Notes: a model not told the origin generated them from the letters alone. A stretch of DNA of 64,000 nucleotides from Oculina patagonica (GCF_052425735.1 NC_135758.1:4588001-4652000), one strand, 5' to 3'; positions 45,617 to 50,059 are shown, counted from the first letter of the stretch. Made by a program: numbers and translations.

Positions 45617-48600
45617 TTACTTTCCAAACTTAAATGTCACGTCATCCCCAATCAACATAAACGGTGCCCACTCGGAAACCTTGGTAAAGCCGTTACCTCT
45701 CATCCACTTCATGGCCTCGTGAAGAGATTCACTGGCGCTTTCCCCACGAACAAGGTGCTCATAGAAGCGACGCATCAGTTGCTCTGTCGCTCTGTCTTCT
45801 ATGGCCCACAGTGCCACCAGTACTGAACGTGCACCCGATCCTAAGAATGCTCGAGCGATTCCAACCACTCCCTCGGCTCGGATCTGTCCATGTCCACTGT
45901 GACAACAGCTAAGTACCACCAGCTTAGCTCGCAGTCTAATGTTCGATATGTCAGACATTGTCAACAGGTAGTCTTCTTCACTTGGAATTCCAGTAGCAGT
46001 GCATAAGGGCGAAAGAGCAATTTCTCCTCTTTCAGCATTTCCATGTGCAGCAAAATGTATCAGGCTTACTGAATGCATCCTTTCAATCACCGCCTGCTTG
46101 GTTGCGCAGTGTCCTAACAAAGGCTGTACGCCCAGCAGTTCTCCAATCATCTCTGCTTCCTTTCTTGCACAAGTCAATGGTTTAAAGTTCTCAACACGCC
46201 CCATGTAACGCACCCGGCCAACCACAGGATCACCTACTATCAGAGCGCCAGTCTGATTGTGATAGTCTGCTGGACTGTCCTGAATGAGTTTGAGAGTCGA
46301 TAAGGAAGGAACAATACGGATCCTGAAAGTCTGTGATAAATACTTCCCGCCTTCATCACTTAAAGCTGCAAACGGAACTTGATTCAAGGAACGATCAGGA
46401 ACAATGATTATTTCAGGCTCCTCAAGTAAGTCAGCCACAGGAGCGATGAGCATTCTGTAACACAAAGAAACGCTCGATTCTGGATTTTGACTTTCTTCAT
46501 TAACATCCTCTACAAGTCGCAAAGCTGTTAGGCTTTCTTCTTGGCGTGATTTAACGTTTGAATCAACGTCATTCAAAGACCGATCTTCGCAACTCTCCCC
46601 GGGTAAAATACTAAAGTTGCGGAAGCTTTTATCAAAGAAATCAGCCAAATTGGAAACTAAACCGGCACCAACAATGTTTTCGTTTACTGTTAATCTTCGA
46701 AAGTAAATGACTCCGCTGCTTTTGAGGATCCACAAAAATACATCTTGTTTATAGTAAGATATATACAGACAAACGCAGTTGCTTTCTTTCTTCATAATAT
46801 TCTCAATACCAATCCACGATTGCGGATTAGCTGAGATTTCACTTTCAACAGAATACTGAGTCGCCATCAGGTCTGCTAGGGCTCTAGCCCGTGCCAGCTC
46901 TAGGACATAAAGAGCATTGTCAGGATTTCCAGAAAAACAAAAGAATGCACTTAGATACTGGTAGGGAGAACTGTGGACGTCAGAAAAGAACATTTTAAAT
47001 TGATCGTTATCTTTCAGAAAACAACGCAAAATTTCACTTTTGTTAATGCTCAGAAGCAGATGATCAAACGCTTCCTGGAACTTTCCTTGGGAAACCTTTA
47101 CCATTGCCAGGGTACAAAGACATTCAAACTCTTTGTCAAGGTCTCCAATATCTTGACTAATTGAAATTGCCTTATCAAGATAACCTTCAGCCATGACATG
47201 TTCACCAAGAGAGTTAAACACAGTTCCTAAGTTTCCGTAATCCGCTGCTTCACCTGCTCTGTCGCCAATTTCAATTCTGATCGCAAGTGCTTTCTCGAGA
47301 TATTCTTTAGCTTTGTCATATTCACCAAGAGAGTTAAACACAGTTCCTACGTTTCCGTAGGATGATGCCTCTCCTTTTTTGTCGCCAATTTTAATTCTGA
47401 TCGCAAGAGCTTTCTCGTGGTATTCTTTCGCTTTGTCATATTCACCAAGAGAGTTAAACACAGTTCCTAAGTTTCCGTAATCTGCTGCTTCTCCTGCTTT
47501 GTCGCCAATTTCAATTCTGATCGCAAGTGCTTTCTCGAGATATTCTTTACCTTTGTCATATTCACCAAGAGAGTTAAACACAGTTCCTAAGTTTCCGTAG
47601 GATGATGCCTCCCCTTTTTTGTCGTTAATTTTAATTCTGATCGCAAGAGCTTTCTCGTGATATTCTTTAGCTTTGTCATATTCACCAAGAGAGTTAAACA
47701 CAGTTCCTAAGTTTCCGTAATCTGCTGCTTCTCCTCCTCTGTCGCCAATTTCAATTCTGATCGCAAGTGCTTTCTCGAGATATTCTTTAGCTTTGTCATA
47801 TTCACCAAGAGAGTTAAACACAGTTCCTAAGTTTCCGTAATCTGCTGCTTCTCCTTCTTTGTCGCCAATTTCAATTCTGATCGCAAGTGCTTTCTCGAGA
47901 TATTCTTTAGCTTTGTCATATTCTCCAAGAGAGTTAAACACAGTTCCTAAGTTTCCGTAATCTGCTGCTTCTCCTGCTTTGTCGCCAATTTCAATTCTGA
48001 TCGCAAGTGCTTTCTCGAGATATTCTTTAGCTTTGTCATATTCACCAAGAGAGTTAAACACAGTTCCTAAGTTTCCGTAGGATGATGCTTCTCCTTTTCT
48101 GTCGCCAATTTTAATTCTGATCGCAAGTGCTTTCTCGAGATATTCTTTACCTTTGTCATATTCACCAAGAGAGTTAAACACAGTTCCTAAGTTTCCGTAG
48201 GATGATGCCTCCCCTTTTTTGTCGTTAATTTTAATTCTGATCGCAAGAGCTTTCTCGTGATATTCTTTAGCTTTGTCATATTCACCAAGAGATTGAAACA
48301 CAGTTCCTAAGTTTCCGTAATCTGCTGCTTCACCTGCTCTGTCACCAATTTCAATTCTGATCGCAAGTGCTTTCTCGAGATATTCTTTAGCTTTGTCATA
48401 TTCACCAAGATAGTCAAACACAGTTCCTAAGTTTCCGTAGGATGATGCTTCTCCTTTTTTGTCGCCAATTTCAATTTTCATCGCAAGTGCTTTCTCGAGA
48501 TATTCTTTAGCTTTGCCATATTCACCAAGAGAGTCAAACACAGTTCCTAAGTTTCCGTAATCTGCTGCTTCTCCTGCTTTGTCGCCAATTTCAATTCTGA

Positions 48601-50059
48601 TCGCAAGAGCTTTCTCGAGATATTCTTTACCTTTGTCATATTCACCAAGAGAGTTAAACACAGTTCCTAAGTTTCCGTAGGATGATGCCTCCCCTTTTTT
48701 GTCGTTAATTTTAATTCTGATCGCAAGAGCTTTCTCGAGATATTCTTTACCTTTGCCATATTCACCAAGAGAGTTAAACACAGTTCCTAAGTTTCCGTAG
48801 GATGATGCCTCCCCTTTTTTGTCGTTAATTTTAATTCTGATCGCAAGAGCTTTCTCGTGATATTCTTTAGCTTTGTCATATTCACCAAGAGAGTCAAACA
48901 CAGTTCCTAAGTTTCCGTAATCTGCTGCTTCTCCTGCTCTGTCGCCAATTTCAATTCTGATCGCAAGTGCTTTCTCGAGATATTCTTTAGCTTTGTCATA
49001 TTCACCAAGAGATTGAAACACAGTTCCTAAGTTTCCGTAATCTGCTGCTTCTCCTTCTTTGTCGCCAATTTCAATTCTGATCGCAAGTGCTTTCTCGAGA
49101 TATTCTTTAGCTTTGTCATATTCACCAAGAGATTGAAACACAGTTCCTAAGTTTCCGTAATCTGCTGCTTCTCCTTCTTTGTCGCCAATTTCAATTCTGA
49201 TCGCAAGTGCTTTCTCGAGATATTCTTTACCTTTGTCATATTCACCAAGAGATTGAAACACAGTTCCTAAGTTTCCGTAATCTGCTGCTTCACCTGCTCT
49301 GTCACCAATTTCAATTCTGATCGCAAGTGCTTTCTCGAGATATTCTTTAGCTTTGTCATATTCACCAAGATAGTCAAACACAGTTCCTAAGTTTCCGTAG
49401 GATGATGCTTCTCCTTTTTTGTCGCCAATTTCAATTTTCATCGCAAGTGCTTTCTCGAGATATTCTTTAGCTTTGCCATATTCACCAAGAGAGTTAAACA
49501 CAGCTCCTAAGTTTCCGTAGGATGATGCTTCTCCCTTTCTGTCGCCAATTTGAATTCTGATCGCAAGTTCTTTCCTCAGATGTTCCTCAGCTTTCACATA
49601 TTCACCAAGATAATAAGACATAGTTCCGCATTTTCCATAAGCGTATGATTGTCCTTCTCTGTTGCTAGTTTCTATCATGATATTGATCGCTCTCTCATAA
49701 AGTTCTCTTGCCTCGGCATATTTGCACCACCGTTCATATTTGCCTGCTAGTGCTATAGTAATTTTCTCTTCTATGGCTGTTTGACCACCCTCGCGGCAAA
49801 TGACAAGAAGTTTTCTTCCGTATTTTATTGCATTTGTGTAATCAGAGAGAAAGCAATACGAGCTGAACATCAATTTATAGAAACCAATTTGAAATAGTTT
49901 GACTAAATGTTCTTGTTTCCCCAGTGCTTCATTATTGAGGAAAATCAAACATTCTTTGCATATCTCGATGGCTTTTAGACCACGACCGGTGTTGAGAAGA
50001 AAGGTAGCGACAGTTAAGCCGATACAGACGGCTTGTAAAATGTAGTCTATGTTGTTCAT
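45617..50059 (-). CDS. TPR-CHAT (TTC28-like) paralogue 3, 1480 aa: 20 near-identical TPR units plus CHAT protease domain
   Basis: Uninterrupted ORF. Same CHAT motifs as gene 2: IHFAAHG (His 46043-46045) and LVVLSCCHSG (Cys 45902-45904). The length difference from gene 2 corresponds to six extra 40-aa units. Confidence 0.95.
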   Translation of the reverse strand: MNNIDYILQAVCIGLTVATFLLNTGRGLKAIEICKECLIFLNNEALGKQEHLVKLFQIGFYKLMFSSYCFLSDYTNAIKYGRKLLVICREGGQTAIEEKITIALAGKYERWCKYAEARELYERAINIMIETSNREGQSYAYGKCGTMSYYLGEYVKAEEHLRKELAIRIQIGDRKGEASSYGNLGAVFNSLGEYGKAKEYLEKALAMKIEIGDKKGEASSYGNLGTVFDYLGEYDKAKEYLEKALAIRIEIGDRAGEAADYGNLGTVFQSLGEYDKGKEYLEKALAIRIEIGDKEGEAADYGNLGTVFQSLGEYDKAKEYLEKALAIRIEIGDKEGEAADYGNLGTVFQSLGEYDKAKEYLEKALAIRIEIGDRAGEAADYGNLGTVFDSLGEYDKAKEYHEKALAIRIKINDKKGEASSYGNLGTVFNSLGEYGKGKEYLEKALAIRIKINDKKGEASSYGNLGTVFNSLGEYDKGKEYLEKALAIRIEIGDKAGEAADYGNLGTVFDSLGEYGKAKEYLEKALAMKIEIGDKKGEASSYGNLGTVFDYLGEYDKAKEYLEKALAIRIEIGDRAGEAADYGNLGTVFQSLGEYDKAKEYHEKALAIRIKINDKKGEASSYGNLGTVFNSLGEYDKGKEYLEKALAIRIKIGDRKGEASSYGNLGTVFNSLGEYDKAKEYLEKALAIRIEIGDKAGEAADYGNLGTVFNSLGEYDKAKEYLEKALAIRIEIGDKEGEAADYGNLGTVFNSLGEYDKAKEYLEKALAIRIEIGDRGGEAADYGNLGTVFNSLGEYDKAKEYHEKALAIRIKINDKKGEASSYGNLGTVFNSLGEYDKGKEYLEKALAIRIEIGDKAGEAADYGNLGTVFNSLGEYDKAKEYHEKALAIRIKIGDKKGEASSYGNVGTVFNSLGEYDKAKEYLEKALAIRIEIGDRAGEAADYGNLGTVFNSLGEHVMAEGYLDKAISISQDIGDLDKEFECLCTLAMVKVSQGKFQEAFDHLLLSINKSEILRCFLKDNDQFKMFFSDVHSSPYQYLSAFFCFSGNPDNALYVLELARARALADLMATQYSVESEISANPQSWIGIENIMKKESNCVCLYISYYKQDVFLWILKSSGVIYFRRLTVNENIVGAGLVSNLADFFDKSFRNFSILPGESCEDRSLNDVDSNVKSRQEESLTALRLVEDVNEESQNPESSVSLCYRMLIAPVADLLEEPEIIIVPDRSLNQVPFAALSDEGGKYLSQTFRIRIVPSLSTLKLIQDSPADYHNQTGALIVGDPVVGRVRYMGRVENFKPLTCARKEAEMIGELLGVQPLLGHCATKQAVIERMHSVSLIHFAAHGNAERGEIALSPLCTATGIPSEEDYLLTMSDISNIRLRAKLVVLSCCHSGHGQIRAEGVVGIARAFLGSGARSVLVALWAIEDRATEQLMRRFYEHLVRGESASESLHEAMKWMRGNGFTKVSEWAPFMLIGDDVTFKFGK
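47200..49600 (-). repeat. Highly homogenised 120-bp x 20 TPR array of gene 3
   Basis: CAGTTCCTAAGTTTCCGTA (or a 1-nt variant) recurs every 120 bp from 47221 to 49501, with no indels. Confidence 0.97.

Follow-up and report, generated by a model that had tools for sequence, protein, structure and literature searches.

Gene content of the locus

The window analysed here is a stretch of 64,000 nucleotides from the coral Oculina patagonica (GCF_052425735.1, NC_135758.1:4588001-4652000), in which three TPR-CHAT paralogues lie within 50 kb on one strand, the minus strand. Gene 3 (45617..50059), assigned by Pfam and its homologues to the TPR-CHAT (TTC28-like) type, is an intact single-exon open reading frame (ORF) of 1480 aa. 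Gene 2 (15596..19336) is a paralogue with about 14 units, which are more diverged and include the hexamers TCATCC and GCAGAT. The third paralogue, gene 1 (1..1270), is represented by its N-terminal part with about seven units, since it is cut by the window start. Pfam also detects a Gypsy-type pol (36990-40880) and BEL/Pao parts (20623-24382). The tandem paralogues, gene 3 included, number at least three and have retrotransposons in between.

Gene 3 is organised into four parts, all read on the minus strand. The N-terminal cap region (aa 1-165, 49565..50059) is not homogenised and consists of degenerate TPR-like helices; its pN/pS between gene 3 and gene 2 is 0.93. In many homologues the cap unit stands at residue 126, as it does in gene 3, hence the N-terminus looks complete. 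Then follow the array of 20 LGN-type TPR units of 120 bp (40 aa) each (47165..49564), a middle or linker region without a Pfam family (aa 966-1200, 46460..47164), and a CHAT caspase-like protease domain (aa 1201-1472, 45641..46459). The repeats match Pfam TPR_12 in 15 stretches (E=1.8e-179), while CHAT (PF12770) occurs once, at the C-terminus (E=7.4e-57; score 193.4 bits, gathering cut-off 24). When the domain is aligned to the solved CHAT protein 8rot_B, the motif HFAAHGN (aa 1335-1341, 46037-46057, minus strand) pairs with ATHG and LSCCHSG (aa 1383-1389, 45893-45913, minus strand) with AACEGG; the His and Cys motifs of a putative caspase-like protease are kept. Among PDB sequences, 8rot_B was the only match to the CHAT domain (E=2.6e-5), and Csx29 was not matched. 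The Pfam scan of gene 3 gave only TPR-type families, CHAT and weak spurious matches, with no NACHT or NB-ARC.

A homologue search with gene 3 returned 4181 matches, the best of them being coral proteins named "tetratricopeptide repeat protein 28-like" from Oculina patagonica, Orbicella faveolata and Stylophora pistillata, and identity to these is at most 85%, over the C-terminal 481 aa. No record of the exact protein was found, and the exact DNA had no match in metagenome contigs. An expansion of this family in corals is already described: Acropora species have 276-304 TPR-CHAT genes per genome, lying as tandem duplicates in non-syntenic regions rich in transposable elements (PMC12314368), and the TPR-CHAT or TTC28-like expansion is also reported elsewhere (PMC9145168, PMC6208414). 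Gene 3 resembles these genes in having a single CHAT domain behind a long array of TPRs at the N-terminus, the array length being variable among them, and in its location in a tandem cluster interspersed with retrotransposons. Judged by its sequence, gene 3 is a functional-looking, intact member of the scleractinian expansion. The three studies deal with gene number and TPR length only, whereas the within-array homogenisation, the SS/AD dimorphism and the hypervariable stripe on helix A described below are absent from them.

The repeat array and its switches

The motif GEA..YGN occurs 20 times in gene 3 at a spacing of exactly 40 aa, and TRF reports a repeat at 47197-49610 with a period of 120, 20.1 copies, 91% matches and no indels; alignment to GPSM2/LGN, AF2 and Foldseek indicate TPRs of the LGN type. 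We number the units 0-19 in a register from 49564 down to 47165 on the minus strand. Units 0-18 are homogenised; the C-terminal one, unit 19, is a degenerate cap. The array of 20 units proposed in the initial annotation is therefore real, in register and inside one ORF, and the order given there for the two dipeptides, SS or AD at codons 14-15 and NS, QS, DS or DY at codons 24-25, agrees exactly when matched unit by unit. So do the further switches, A/G at codon 32, L/H at codon 36, IRIE/IRIK/MKIE at codons 2-5 and GD/ND at codon 7, all of which were found. SS is encoded by TCATCC in nine of nine SS units, and AD by GCAGAT in 10 units and by GCGGAT in the last one. The claim that the SS/AD site is never intermediate holds within gene 3 but not for the paralogues in the window, which carry TS, TD, GD, AG and TA.

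At the nucleotide level 39 of the 120 columns vary, 12 of them in the degenerate last unit alone, and 22 are informative. Unit 1 is identical in DNA to unit 9, unit 3 to unit 4, and unit 11 to unit 16. NS is found in 13 of the 20 units, on SS and AD units alike, and in 8 of 906 units of the family; this Asn24 state is almost unique to gene 3, yet it stands on both unit classes. A runs test on the succession of SS and AD units shows no departure from randomness (P=0.39).

One may ask if the unit number and order, or the identical tracts, come from collapse or mis-joining of repeats, paralogues or alleles during assembly. Repeats of 120 bp that are 91% identical, with exact tracts of up to 264 bp, are hard for short-read assemblers, and the region is a cluster of a multi-copy family. 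Against this, the frame is open over 4.4 kb with a perfect 40-aa register, the window has no N, comparable arrays with the same features exist in independent assemblies of other corals, and gap-free arrays are present in phased long-read coral assemblies (PMC12314368). We thus consider an artefact very unlikely.

Exchange and homogenisation

The initial annotation had noticed that 48301-48530 is identical to 49261-49490. The two stretches match without a single difference, and the match continues beyond them to a length of 264 bp (48271-48534 = 49231-49494). One copy (49231..49494, minus strand) runs from codon 24 of unit 0, via unit 1, to codon 32 of unit 2, and the other (48271..48534, minus strand) from codon 24 of unit 8, via unit 9, to codon 32 of unit 10, the offset being 960 bp or eight units. 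Further exact tracts of 180 bp at offset 600 and of 170 bp at offset 120 occur in the array. Exchange tracts begin and finish within units.

All four gametes are present at 62 of 231 informative site pairs, and hence Rm is at least 6. To this extent the markers do reassort between units as first described; however, codons 5-15 form one block in complete linkage, so that assortment is not free. K10 goes with SS in nine of nine units, K5 and N7 always precede SS, and each H36 has a K5 after it, while codons 24-25 are the sole ones that assort against SS/AD.

The nearest unit lies within the same array for 19 of 19 core units in gene 3, for 8 of 13 in gene 2 and for none of six in gene 1, and the TRF matches are 91%, 83% and 86%, respectively. 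Synonymous diversity among gene 3 units is 0.097, whereas the C-terminal region of gene 3 compared with that of gene 2 gives 0.284. With all core units nearest to their own array and at least six exchange events, recent unequal crossover or gene conversion, which had been suggested from the identical tract and the marker reassortment, is supported, the exact multi-unit tracts and the four-gamete result pointing the same way. The array of gene 3 grew and was homogenised after its split from gene 2, in a 120-bp register. The hexamers TCATCC and GCAGAT are found in genes 1 and 2 too, and the SS and AD unit classes predate the gene 3 array.

Structure and groove geometry

AF2 with an MSA gives a model with pLDDT 95.8, in which helix A covers unit positions 9-25 and helix B 29-46. 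The best Foldseek matches are LGN/Pins TPR-peptide complexes (TM 0.70-0.80), and the units align with GPSM2/LGN over 40 aa without gaps (E ~1e-46). Like LGN/GPSM2/Pins (PDB 3SF4, 3RO2, 4WND, 6HC2, 4A1S), gene 3 has a gap-free 40-residue period, at 30-32% identity, the Asn of the (L)GN triplet in helix A of every repeat, and a superhelical fold; in LGN/Pins, extended peptides bind inside this superhelix, in its inner groove. Helix A of LGN faces the inner groove and helix B the outside (PMC6525239), and the triplet Asn hydrogen-bonds the peptide backbone (PMC3438535). LGN differs in having eight diverged repeats and C-terminal GoLoco motifs, against 20 near-identical repeats and CHAT in gene 3, where the Pfam scan found no GoLoco family and the C-terminus is CHAT; gene 3 is therefore not an LGN orthologue.

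The main switches (positions 10, 14-15 and 24-25) fall on helix A in one stripe adjoining the invariant Asn18, although position 24 is about 120 degrees off Asn18 on a helical wheel. The dipeptides occupy canonical TPR positions 2-3 and 12-13, of which 2, 12 and 13 belong to the concave, hypervariable set 2, 5, 9, 12 and 13 (PMC1261162). From LGN homology, canonical TPR geometry and helical phase, rather than from model coordinates, we infer that the stripe (10, 14, 15, 24, 25) beside the Asn18 ladder is the predicted inner-groove wall. Of all codons that vary in gene 3, about half (2, 3, 5, 7, 30, 32, 36) lie on helix B or in a loop. The expectation that the variable residues face the groove on helix A stands for both dipeptides, given AF2 and LGN homology, but fails for A/G, L/H, IRIE/IRIK/MKIE and GD/ND, which are on helix B or in the B-A loop, the outside in LGN. 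These probably make up a second, linked set of differences on helix B.

Variability across the family

The consensus of 64 homologues is GDKxGEAxxYGNLGTVFxSLG. Within-array mismatch peaks at positions 24, 10, 14, 3, 15 and 21, and scores 0.528 in the concave set chosen beforehand versus 0.300 elsewhere in the unit (P=0.0105 by permutation). Over 92 homologue arrays, hypervariability falls on the same small group of positions. Positions 14-15 take 104 dipeptide states, and positions 24-25 take 103, among the 906 units of the family.

The overall pN/pS among gene 3 units is 0.78, and it is 2.05 in the groove set versus 0.46 in the rest, with the set partly picked post hoc and few sites in it. 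In the pre-chosen concave set, nonsynonymous diversity is 2-5 times as high as at the remaining positions, both in the three genes of the window and in five independent arrays, and it is raised in eight or nine arrays in all. For this set P is 0.07 in gene 3, 0.03 in gene 2 and 0.09 in gene 1, on very few sites, and recombination among units breaks assumptions of these codon tests. The framework has pN/pS of 0.3-0.55. The SS/AD dimorphism is common to gene 3, its neighbouring paralogues and distant arrays, and the serine codons of SS are TCN within the window and AGY in distant arrays, which points to selection at the amino-acid level.

Another account would take the array as a neutral by-product: a few older units were amplified as a segment not long ago, the switches are mere differences inherited from these seeds and play no part in specificity, and the product is a scaffold like TTC28 in cell division. 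The presence of both hexamers in the paralogues, the strong linkage of codons 5-15, the half of the variable codons that lie on helix B and the overall unit pN/pS agree with it, and so does human TTC28, which alone among animal homologues has been studied and is tied to mitosis and cytokinesis rather than to recognition (work cited in PMC12314368). This account is nevertheless rather unlikely in our judgement, in view of the hypervariability of the same positions across 92 arrays, the raised concave nonsynonymous diversity in eight or nine arrays against the framework pN/pS of 0.3-0.55, the spread of the nearly gene 3-specific N24 to both unit classes, and the switch of serine codons between TCN and AGY.

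The initial annotation had suggested a specificity code like that of TALE or PPR proteins. In such a code every unit would use its pair of dipeptides to read a single element of a linear ligand, so that the unit order would spell the target sequence. Gene 3 shares with TALE (RVD) and PPR proteins near-identical helical tandem repeats, recombination of repeats and two residues that carry most of the variation, here as discrete states at two adjacent-residue sites on helix A. Moreover, one invariant Asn per unit could grip the backbone repeatedly, as in LGN (PMC3438535), and a regular register is conceivable because the eight TPRs of LGN accommodate an extended peptide of about 29-40 residues (PMC6525239, PMC3438535). 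However, TALE and PPR proteins use a small alphabet, whereas the family of gene 3 has about 100 states per dipeptide rather than a small reused set. In gene 3 itself the states number only 2 x 4 and show tight linkage to other residues, SS/AD being completely linked to codons 5, 7 and 10; SS/AD is not gene-specific and appears in many arrays whatever their other differences; and its order along the array looks random. To our knowledge, there is no known TPR-peptide code. The proposal is therefore not supported, and we hold it to be very improbable.

Likeness to fungal receptors and Craspase

The analogy with HET-E, also made in the initial annotation, fits better. Highly internally conserved (HIC) repeats are defined by at least 85% repeat identity over at least 100 aa (PMC4986451), and units 0-18 of gene 3 have a mean pairwise amino-acid identity of 0.862 over 760 aa, ranking third against the 92 homologue arrays. 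As in the HIC repeats of fungal NLRs (HET-E/NWD and the TPR protein Pa_2_10340; PMC4986451), units of at least 85% identity are shuffled and evolve in concert, the variation is at few positions on a predicted binding face, and an effector, presumed to act in death or signalling, is fused. Unlike fungal NLRs, which have NACHT or NB-ARC, gene 3 has neither and its effector is the C-terminal CHAT protease; because it lacks a NOD domain the parallel is functional only. The units also differ, being 40-aa LGN-type TPRs as against the 42-aa type in fungal NLRs.

Another relative in architecture is the bacterial TPR-CHAT protein Csx29 of the type III-E CRISPR Craspase, a recognition-gated protease (PMC9729208, PMC9935389). 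Both combine TPRs with a CHAT caspase-like protease, and in Craspase the recognition signal passes via the TPR-bearing protein. However, Csx29 acts as part of a complex with Cas7-11/crRNA and has a small number of diverged TPRs, unlike gene 3.

Interpretation

Taken together, these data suggest that the array is a fast-evolving recognition domain, not a TALE-like code. We regard it as fairly probable that gene 3 is a coral TPR-CHAT gene with recently shuffled repeats, the groove of which is diversified as a recognition surface and does not act as a unit-wise code. On this account, the groove of the TPR superhelix would hold a polypeptide, as ligand or as partner, and such binding would target or gate the caspase-like CHAT protease at the C-terminus. 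As units are shuffled and groove residues diversify, new binding surfaces would arise across the family, in an evolutionary regime that may be that of the highly internally conserved WD, ANK and TPR repeats of fungal NLRs, and the family would form a repertoire of surfaces rather than a code read unit by unit.

A bolder proposal, which we put forward tentatively and consider possible though not the likely case, is that coral TPR-CHAT proteins are the animal counterpart of fungal HIC-repeat receptors, in which the ligand switches on CHAT and the SS and AD classes are selected. If this were true, corals would have hundreds of cytosolic sensors with LGN-type grooves, varied by shuffling and by selection on the helix-A stripe beside the Asn ladder, and a captured ligand of pathogen, symbiont or allogeneic origin would turn on the caspase-like CHAT protease. 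The recurrent SS/AD site, with different serine codon families per lineage, would then mark two functional unit classes kept by selection.

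Gene structure and genomic context

Gene 3 is a single unbroken ORF of 1480 aa (window 45617-50059, minus strand) by ORF scan, in a window where the base count finds no N anywhere. Pfam TPR families cover aa ~130-960 (TPR_12, E=1.8e-179) and one CHAT domain occupies aa 1201-1472 (193 bits, the cut-off being 24); its His motif HFAAHGN (aa 1335-1341) and Cys motif LSCCHSG (aa 1383-1389) both align with a solved CHAT protein. Twenty copies of the motif GEA..YGN follow one another at a spacing of exactly 40 residues, and TRF gives a period of 120, 20.1 copies, 91% matches and zero indels. 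In our register the 20 units, numbered 0-19 from N to C, run from 49564 down to 47165 on the minus strand, the last of them, unit 19, being a degenerate C-terminal cap. Overall, the gene joins a CHAT domain to an LGN-type TPR superhelix of about 21 repeats, and LGN orthologue and fungal-type NLR are both ruled out as its identity by the Pfam domain content.

A protein search with the C-terminal 481 aa matched 4181 proteins, the best of them being 'tetratricopeptide repeat protein 28-like' in Oculina patagonica, Orbicella faveolata and Stylophora pistillata with at most 85% identity. By exact look-up the proteins of genes 3 and 2 are absent from the protein collections, and an exact 36-nt query against metagenome contigs gave zero matches. 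Gene 3 belongs to the coral TPR-CHAT expansion already published: Acropora has 276-304 TPR-CHAT genes per genome, as tandem duplicates in transposon-rich non-syntenic regions and with a TPR length from 31 to >3000 aa (PMC12314368), and the expansion is also reported in Montipora (PMC9145168) and Pocillopora (PMC6208414). Among named homologues P0005 (1489 aa) is the closest; it is encoded in Oculina patagonica CM126635.1 (22.35 Mb), where its annotation is a 9.9-kb multi-exon gene whose translation is not colinear. In its 18 units, positions 14-15 read TD, SC, SS or TN and position 24 is Q, R, A, Y or H, so that relative to gene 3 the framework is kept and the predicted groove residues are different.

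The DNA of the window is animal, with a GC content of ~0.40. Gene 2 (15596-19336, minus strand) and gene 1 (minus strand, truncated by the window start) have the same TPR-CHAT architecture as gene 3 by Pfam and ORF analysis. Between genes 2 and 3 sits an intact 1296-aa pol ORF of a Gypsy/Ty3-type LTR retrotransposon (36990-40880, minus strand; Pfam) with protease, RT, RNase H and integrase domains, and Pfam also identifies parts of a BEL/Pao-type retroelement at 20623-24382 on the plus strand, namely a DUF1759 gag-like ORF, holding a 93 bp x 3 tandem repeat at 20676-20952, followed by Peptidase_A17 and RT. Three minus-strand ORFs of 255-366 aa without a Pfam family (52251-53018, 53274-54308 and 55959-57059) lie in GC-raised stretches (0.46 vs ~0.39). 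A perfect (TTA)22 microsatellite lies at 5064-5129, and two minisatellites lie by the window end at 63377-63537 and 63700-63870, with units of 11/21/31 bp in one and of 18 bp (x 9.5) in the other.

Expansion and exchange within the array

The initial annotation, made from the sequence alone, described the array as near-invariant units that differ by discrete switches. Its N-to-C order of SS or AD (positions 14-15) and NS, QS, DS or DY (positions 24-25) matches ours exactly, unit for unit, and its A/G, L/H, IRIE/IRIK/MKIE and GD/ND switches are all found. The identical tract that it reported is exact and in fact longer, being 264 bp (48271-48534 = 49231-49494); at offsets 600 and 120 there are further exact tracts, of 180 and 170 bp respectively, and the ends of the exact tracts fall within units. 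Four gametes are present at 62 of 231 informative site pairs, which needs at least six exchange events. This result and the tracts ending within units support the proposed unequal crossover or gene conversion in the 120-bp register, and unit exchange reshapes the gene 3 array.

At the DNA level, all 19 of 19 core units of gene 3 are nearest to another gene-3 unit (0-4 differences, vs 5-15 to genes 1 and 2); the own-array nearest neighbour is found for 8/13 units of gene 2 and 0/6 of gene 1. Units of gene 3 have a synonymous diversity of 0.097 and those of gene 2 one of 0.222, and the value between the C-terminal regions of the two genes is 0.284. Because of this lower synonymous diversity and the own-array nearest units, we conclude that the gene 3 array expanded or was homogenised after gene duplication. 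A recent duplication is also seen within gene 2, where units g2_02 and g2_09 (17633-17752 and 18473-18592, minus strand), offset by 7 units (840 bp), differ by 1 nt, the remainder of that array being diverged.

The suggested reassortment of markers between units holds for codons 24-25, 30, 32 and 36/39, but codons 5-15 are in full linkage as a single block. K10 accompanies SS in 9/9 units, K5/N7 are found solely preceding SS, and H36 in one unit is always followed by K5 in the next, a link that makes sense because helix B straddles the unit boundary. A structural tie of K10 to SS is ruled out, since across the family K10 is also common with AD, and the linkage in gene 3 is therefore historical. 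A regular super-repeat is likewise ruled out, as mean identity is flat over unit offsets (0.912-0.938) and the order of S and A units is consistent with random (12 runs, P=0.39, runs test).

Location of the variable residues

Ungapped alignments of the units were obtained with the TPRs of LGN/GPSM2 and Pins, likewise 40 residues long (E ~1e-46), and with designed consensus TPRs, the latter alignment putting unit position p at canonical TPR position p-12; SS/AD thereby occupy TPR positions 2-3 and NS/QS/DS/DY positions 12-13. An AlphaFold2 model with a 64-sequence alignment of homologues reached pLDDT 95.8 and pTM 0.85; in it unit positions 9-25 form helix A, and 29-40 together with 1-6 of the following unit form helix B, while a single-sequence model (640 aa; pLDDT 45), a beta-solenoid, was discarded as meaningless. 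The best Foldseek matches to the model are all LGN/Pins TPR domains with a groove-bound peptide (TM 0.70-0.80). In LGN the inner face of the superhelix is formed by helix A and the outer face by helix B (PMC6525239), and the backbone of the peptide ligand is held through bidentate hydrogen bonds by the Asn in the Leu-Gly-Asn triplet (PMC3438535); that Asn is Asn18 in every gene 3 unit. TPR positions 2, 5, 9, 12 and 13 are generally concave, hypervariable and ligand-contacting (PMC1261162). A helical wheel puts positions 10, 14, 21 and 24 to one side of Asn18 (-40 to -120 degrees) and the conserved positions 13, 16, 20 and 23 on the opposite side.

The variable residues had been proposed to face the groove from helix A. 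By homology to LGN this would apply to both dipeptides and to K/A/E/G at position 10, but not to A/G (32), L/H (36), D/G (30), IR/MK (2-3), E/K (5) and G/N (7), which belong to helix B or the B-A loop. Variation in gene 3 is focused on helix A.

Variability and probable selection across the family

Across 92 homologous arrays, within-array mismatch is highest at positions 24 (0.74), 10 (0.72) and 14 (0.68), then at 3, 15 and 21, while the consensus of 64 homologues keeps GDKxGEAxxYGNLGTVFxSLG in every unit. The concave set (TPR positions 2, 5, 9, 12 and 13), fixed beforehand, has a mean mismatch of 0.528 vs 0.300 elsewhere (permutation P=0.0105), and the variability profile of gene 3 correlates with that of the family (rho 0.41, P=0.009).

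In gene 3, pN/pS is 2.05 at positions 10, 14, 15, 21, 24 and 25 vs 0.46 at the remaining positions; comparison of gene 2 with gene 3 over their C-terminal regions gives 0.42. With every test comprising five codons and ignoring recombination, concave-set pN against the remainder is 0.167 vs 0.064 in gene 3 (P=0.07), 0.293 vs 0.140 in gene 2 (P=0.03), 0.194 vs 0.092 in gene 1 (P=0.09) and 0.14-0.27 vs 0.05-0.085 in five independent arrays, the direction being the same in 8/8 arrays. On these sequence comparisons, diversifying selection is likely to act at the concave positions.

The SS/AD dimorphism and Asn24

The hexamers TCATCC (SS) and GCAGAT (AD) also occur in genes 1 and 2, where the intermediates missing from gene 3, namely TS, TD, GD, AG and TA, are present as well. 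Among 906 units of 120 homologues, positions 14-15 take 104 dipeptide states, SS (205) and AD (173) being the commonest; at least two units of each occur in 15/92 arrays, and family-wide S/A alternation is slightly above expectation (49 vs 39.6 expected, P=0.025). Four distant loci in ENA assemblies ERZ26858540 and ERZ25067879 (L001, L002, L004 and L006) show the SS/AD pattern in otherwise near-identical units, so SS/AD is an old family-wide dimorphism and nothing peculiar to gene 3. At these loci SS is written AGTTCG, AGCTCA or AGTTCA vs TCATCC in the window, the first serine being AGT or AGC and not TCA. Serine AGY and TCN codons are not joined by any single synonymous step; therefore the SS state was reached or kept via different routes, and the switch of codon family argues for selection on SS over pure hitch-hiking.

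NS at positions 24-25, in contrast, is found in 8/906 family units vs 13/20 gene 3 units, on SS and AD units alike. Asn24, almost unique to gene 3, is a direct trace of within-array spread.

Discussion

Two kinds of specificity code, TALE/PPR-like and HET-E-like, had been offered for the array. The former calls for an alphabet that is small and reusable, for specificity residues that vary independently of the remaining unit and for a one-to-one reading rule, and it fails here, given that positions 14-15 have 104 states and SS/AD belong to the linked block of codons 5-15. The HET-E-like half is the better one. Among the WD/ANK/TPR repeats of fungal NLRs, the highly internally conserved ones share at least 85% identity, evolve in concert, are polymorphic in repeat number and have positively selected sites on the concave face (PMC4986451), and these repeats are the nearest evolutionary analogue of the gene 3 array. 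Like them, gene 3 units exceed 85% identity, with a value of 0.862 that ranks third against the 92 homologue arrays. Unlike fungal NLRs, gene 3 has no NOD domain in Pfam; it therefore lies outside their family, although it would be receptor-like in its working.

In the mechanism that we propose, the TPR groove would bind an extended polypeptide whose backbone is gripped by the Asn ladder, the variable helix-A stripe would select ligand side chains, and binding would target or gate the caspase-like CHAT protease; by unit shuffling the family could make new surfaces. The gating step is modelled on the bacterial TPR-CHAT of Craspase, a protease gated by recognition (PMC9729208), and would work in gene 3 by analogy. 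Candidate substrates of the CHAT protease would be coral gasdermin and other death effectors.

Corals have hundreds of TPR-CHAT genes, which the literature has presented mainly as a copy-number expansion. The coral accounts cited here (PMC12314368, PMC9145168, PMC6208414) contain none of the unit-level features, namely homogenisation, a hypervariable stripe next to the Asn ladder, the SS/AD dimorphism and its serine codon switch, and the fungal HIC parallel. The unit-level analysis renders the function of the family more testable and pinpoints unit positions 10, 14, 15, 21 and 24 as mutation targets together with loci for long-read genotyping. The arrays resemble the hypervariable repeats of fungal NLRs in their homogenised framework, shuffled units and variation at the predicted ligand groove, and the testable hypothesis is that the TPR-CHAT family may constitute a repertoire diversified for recognition and linked to a caspase-like effector, which would bear on coral immunity, symbiosis and allorecognition.
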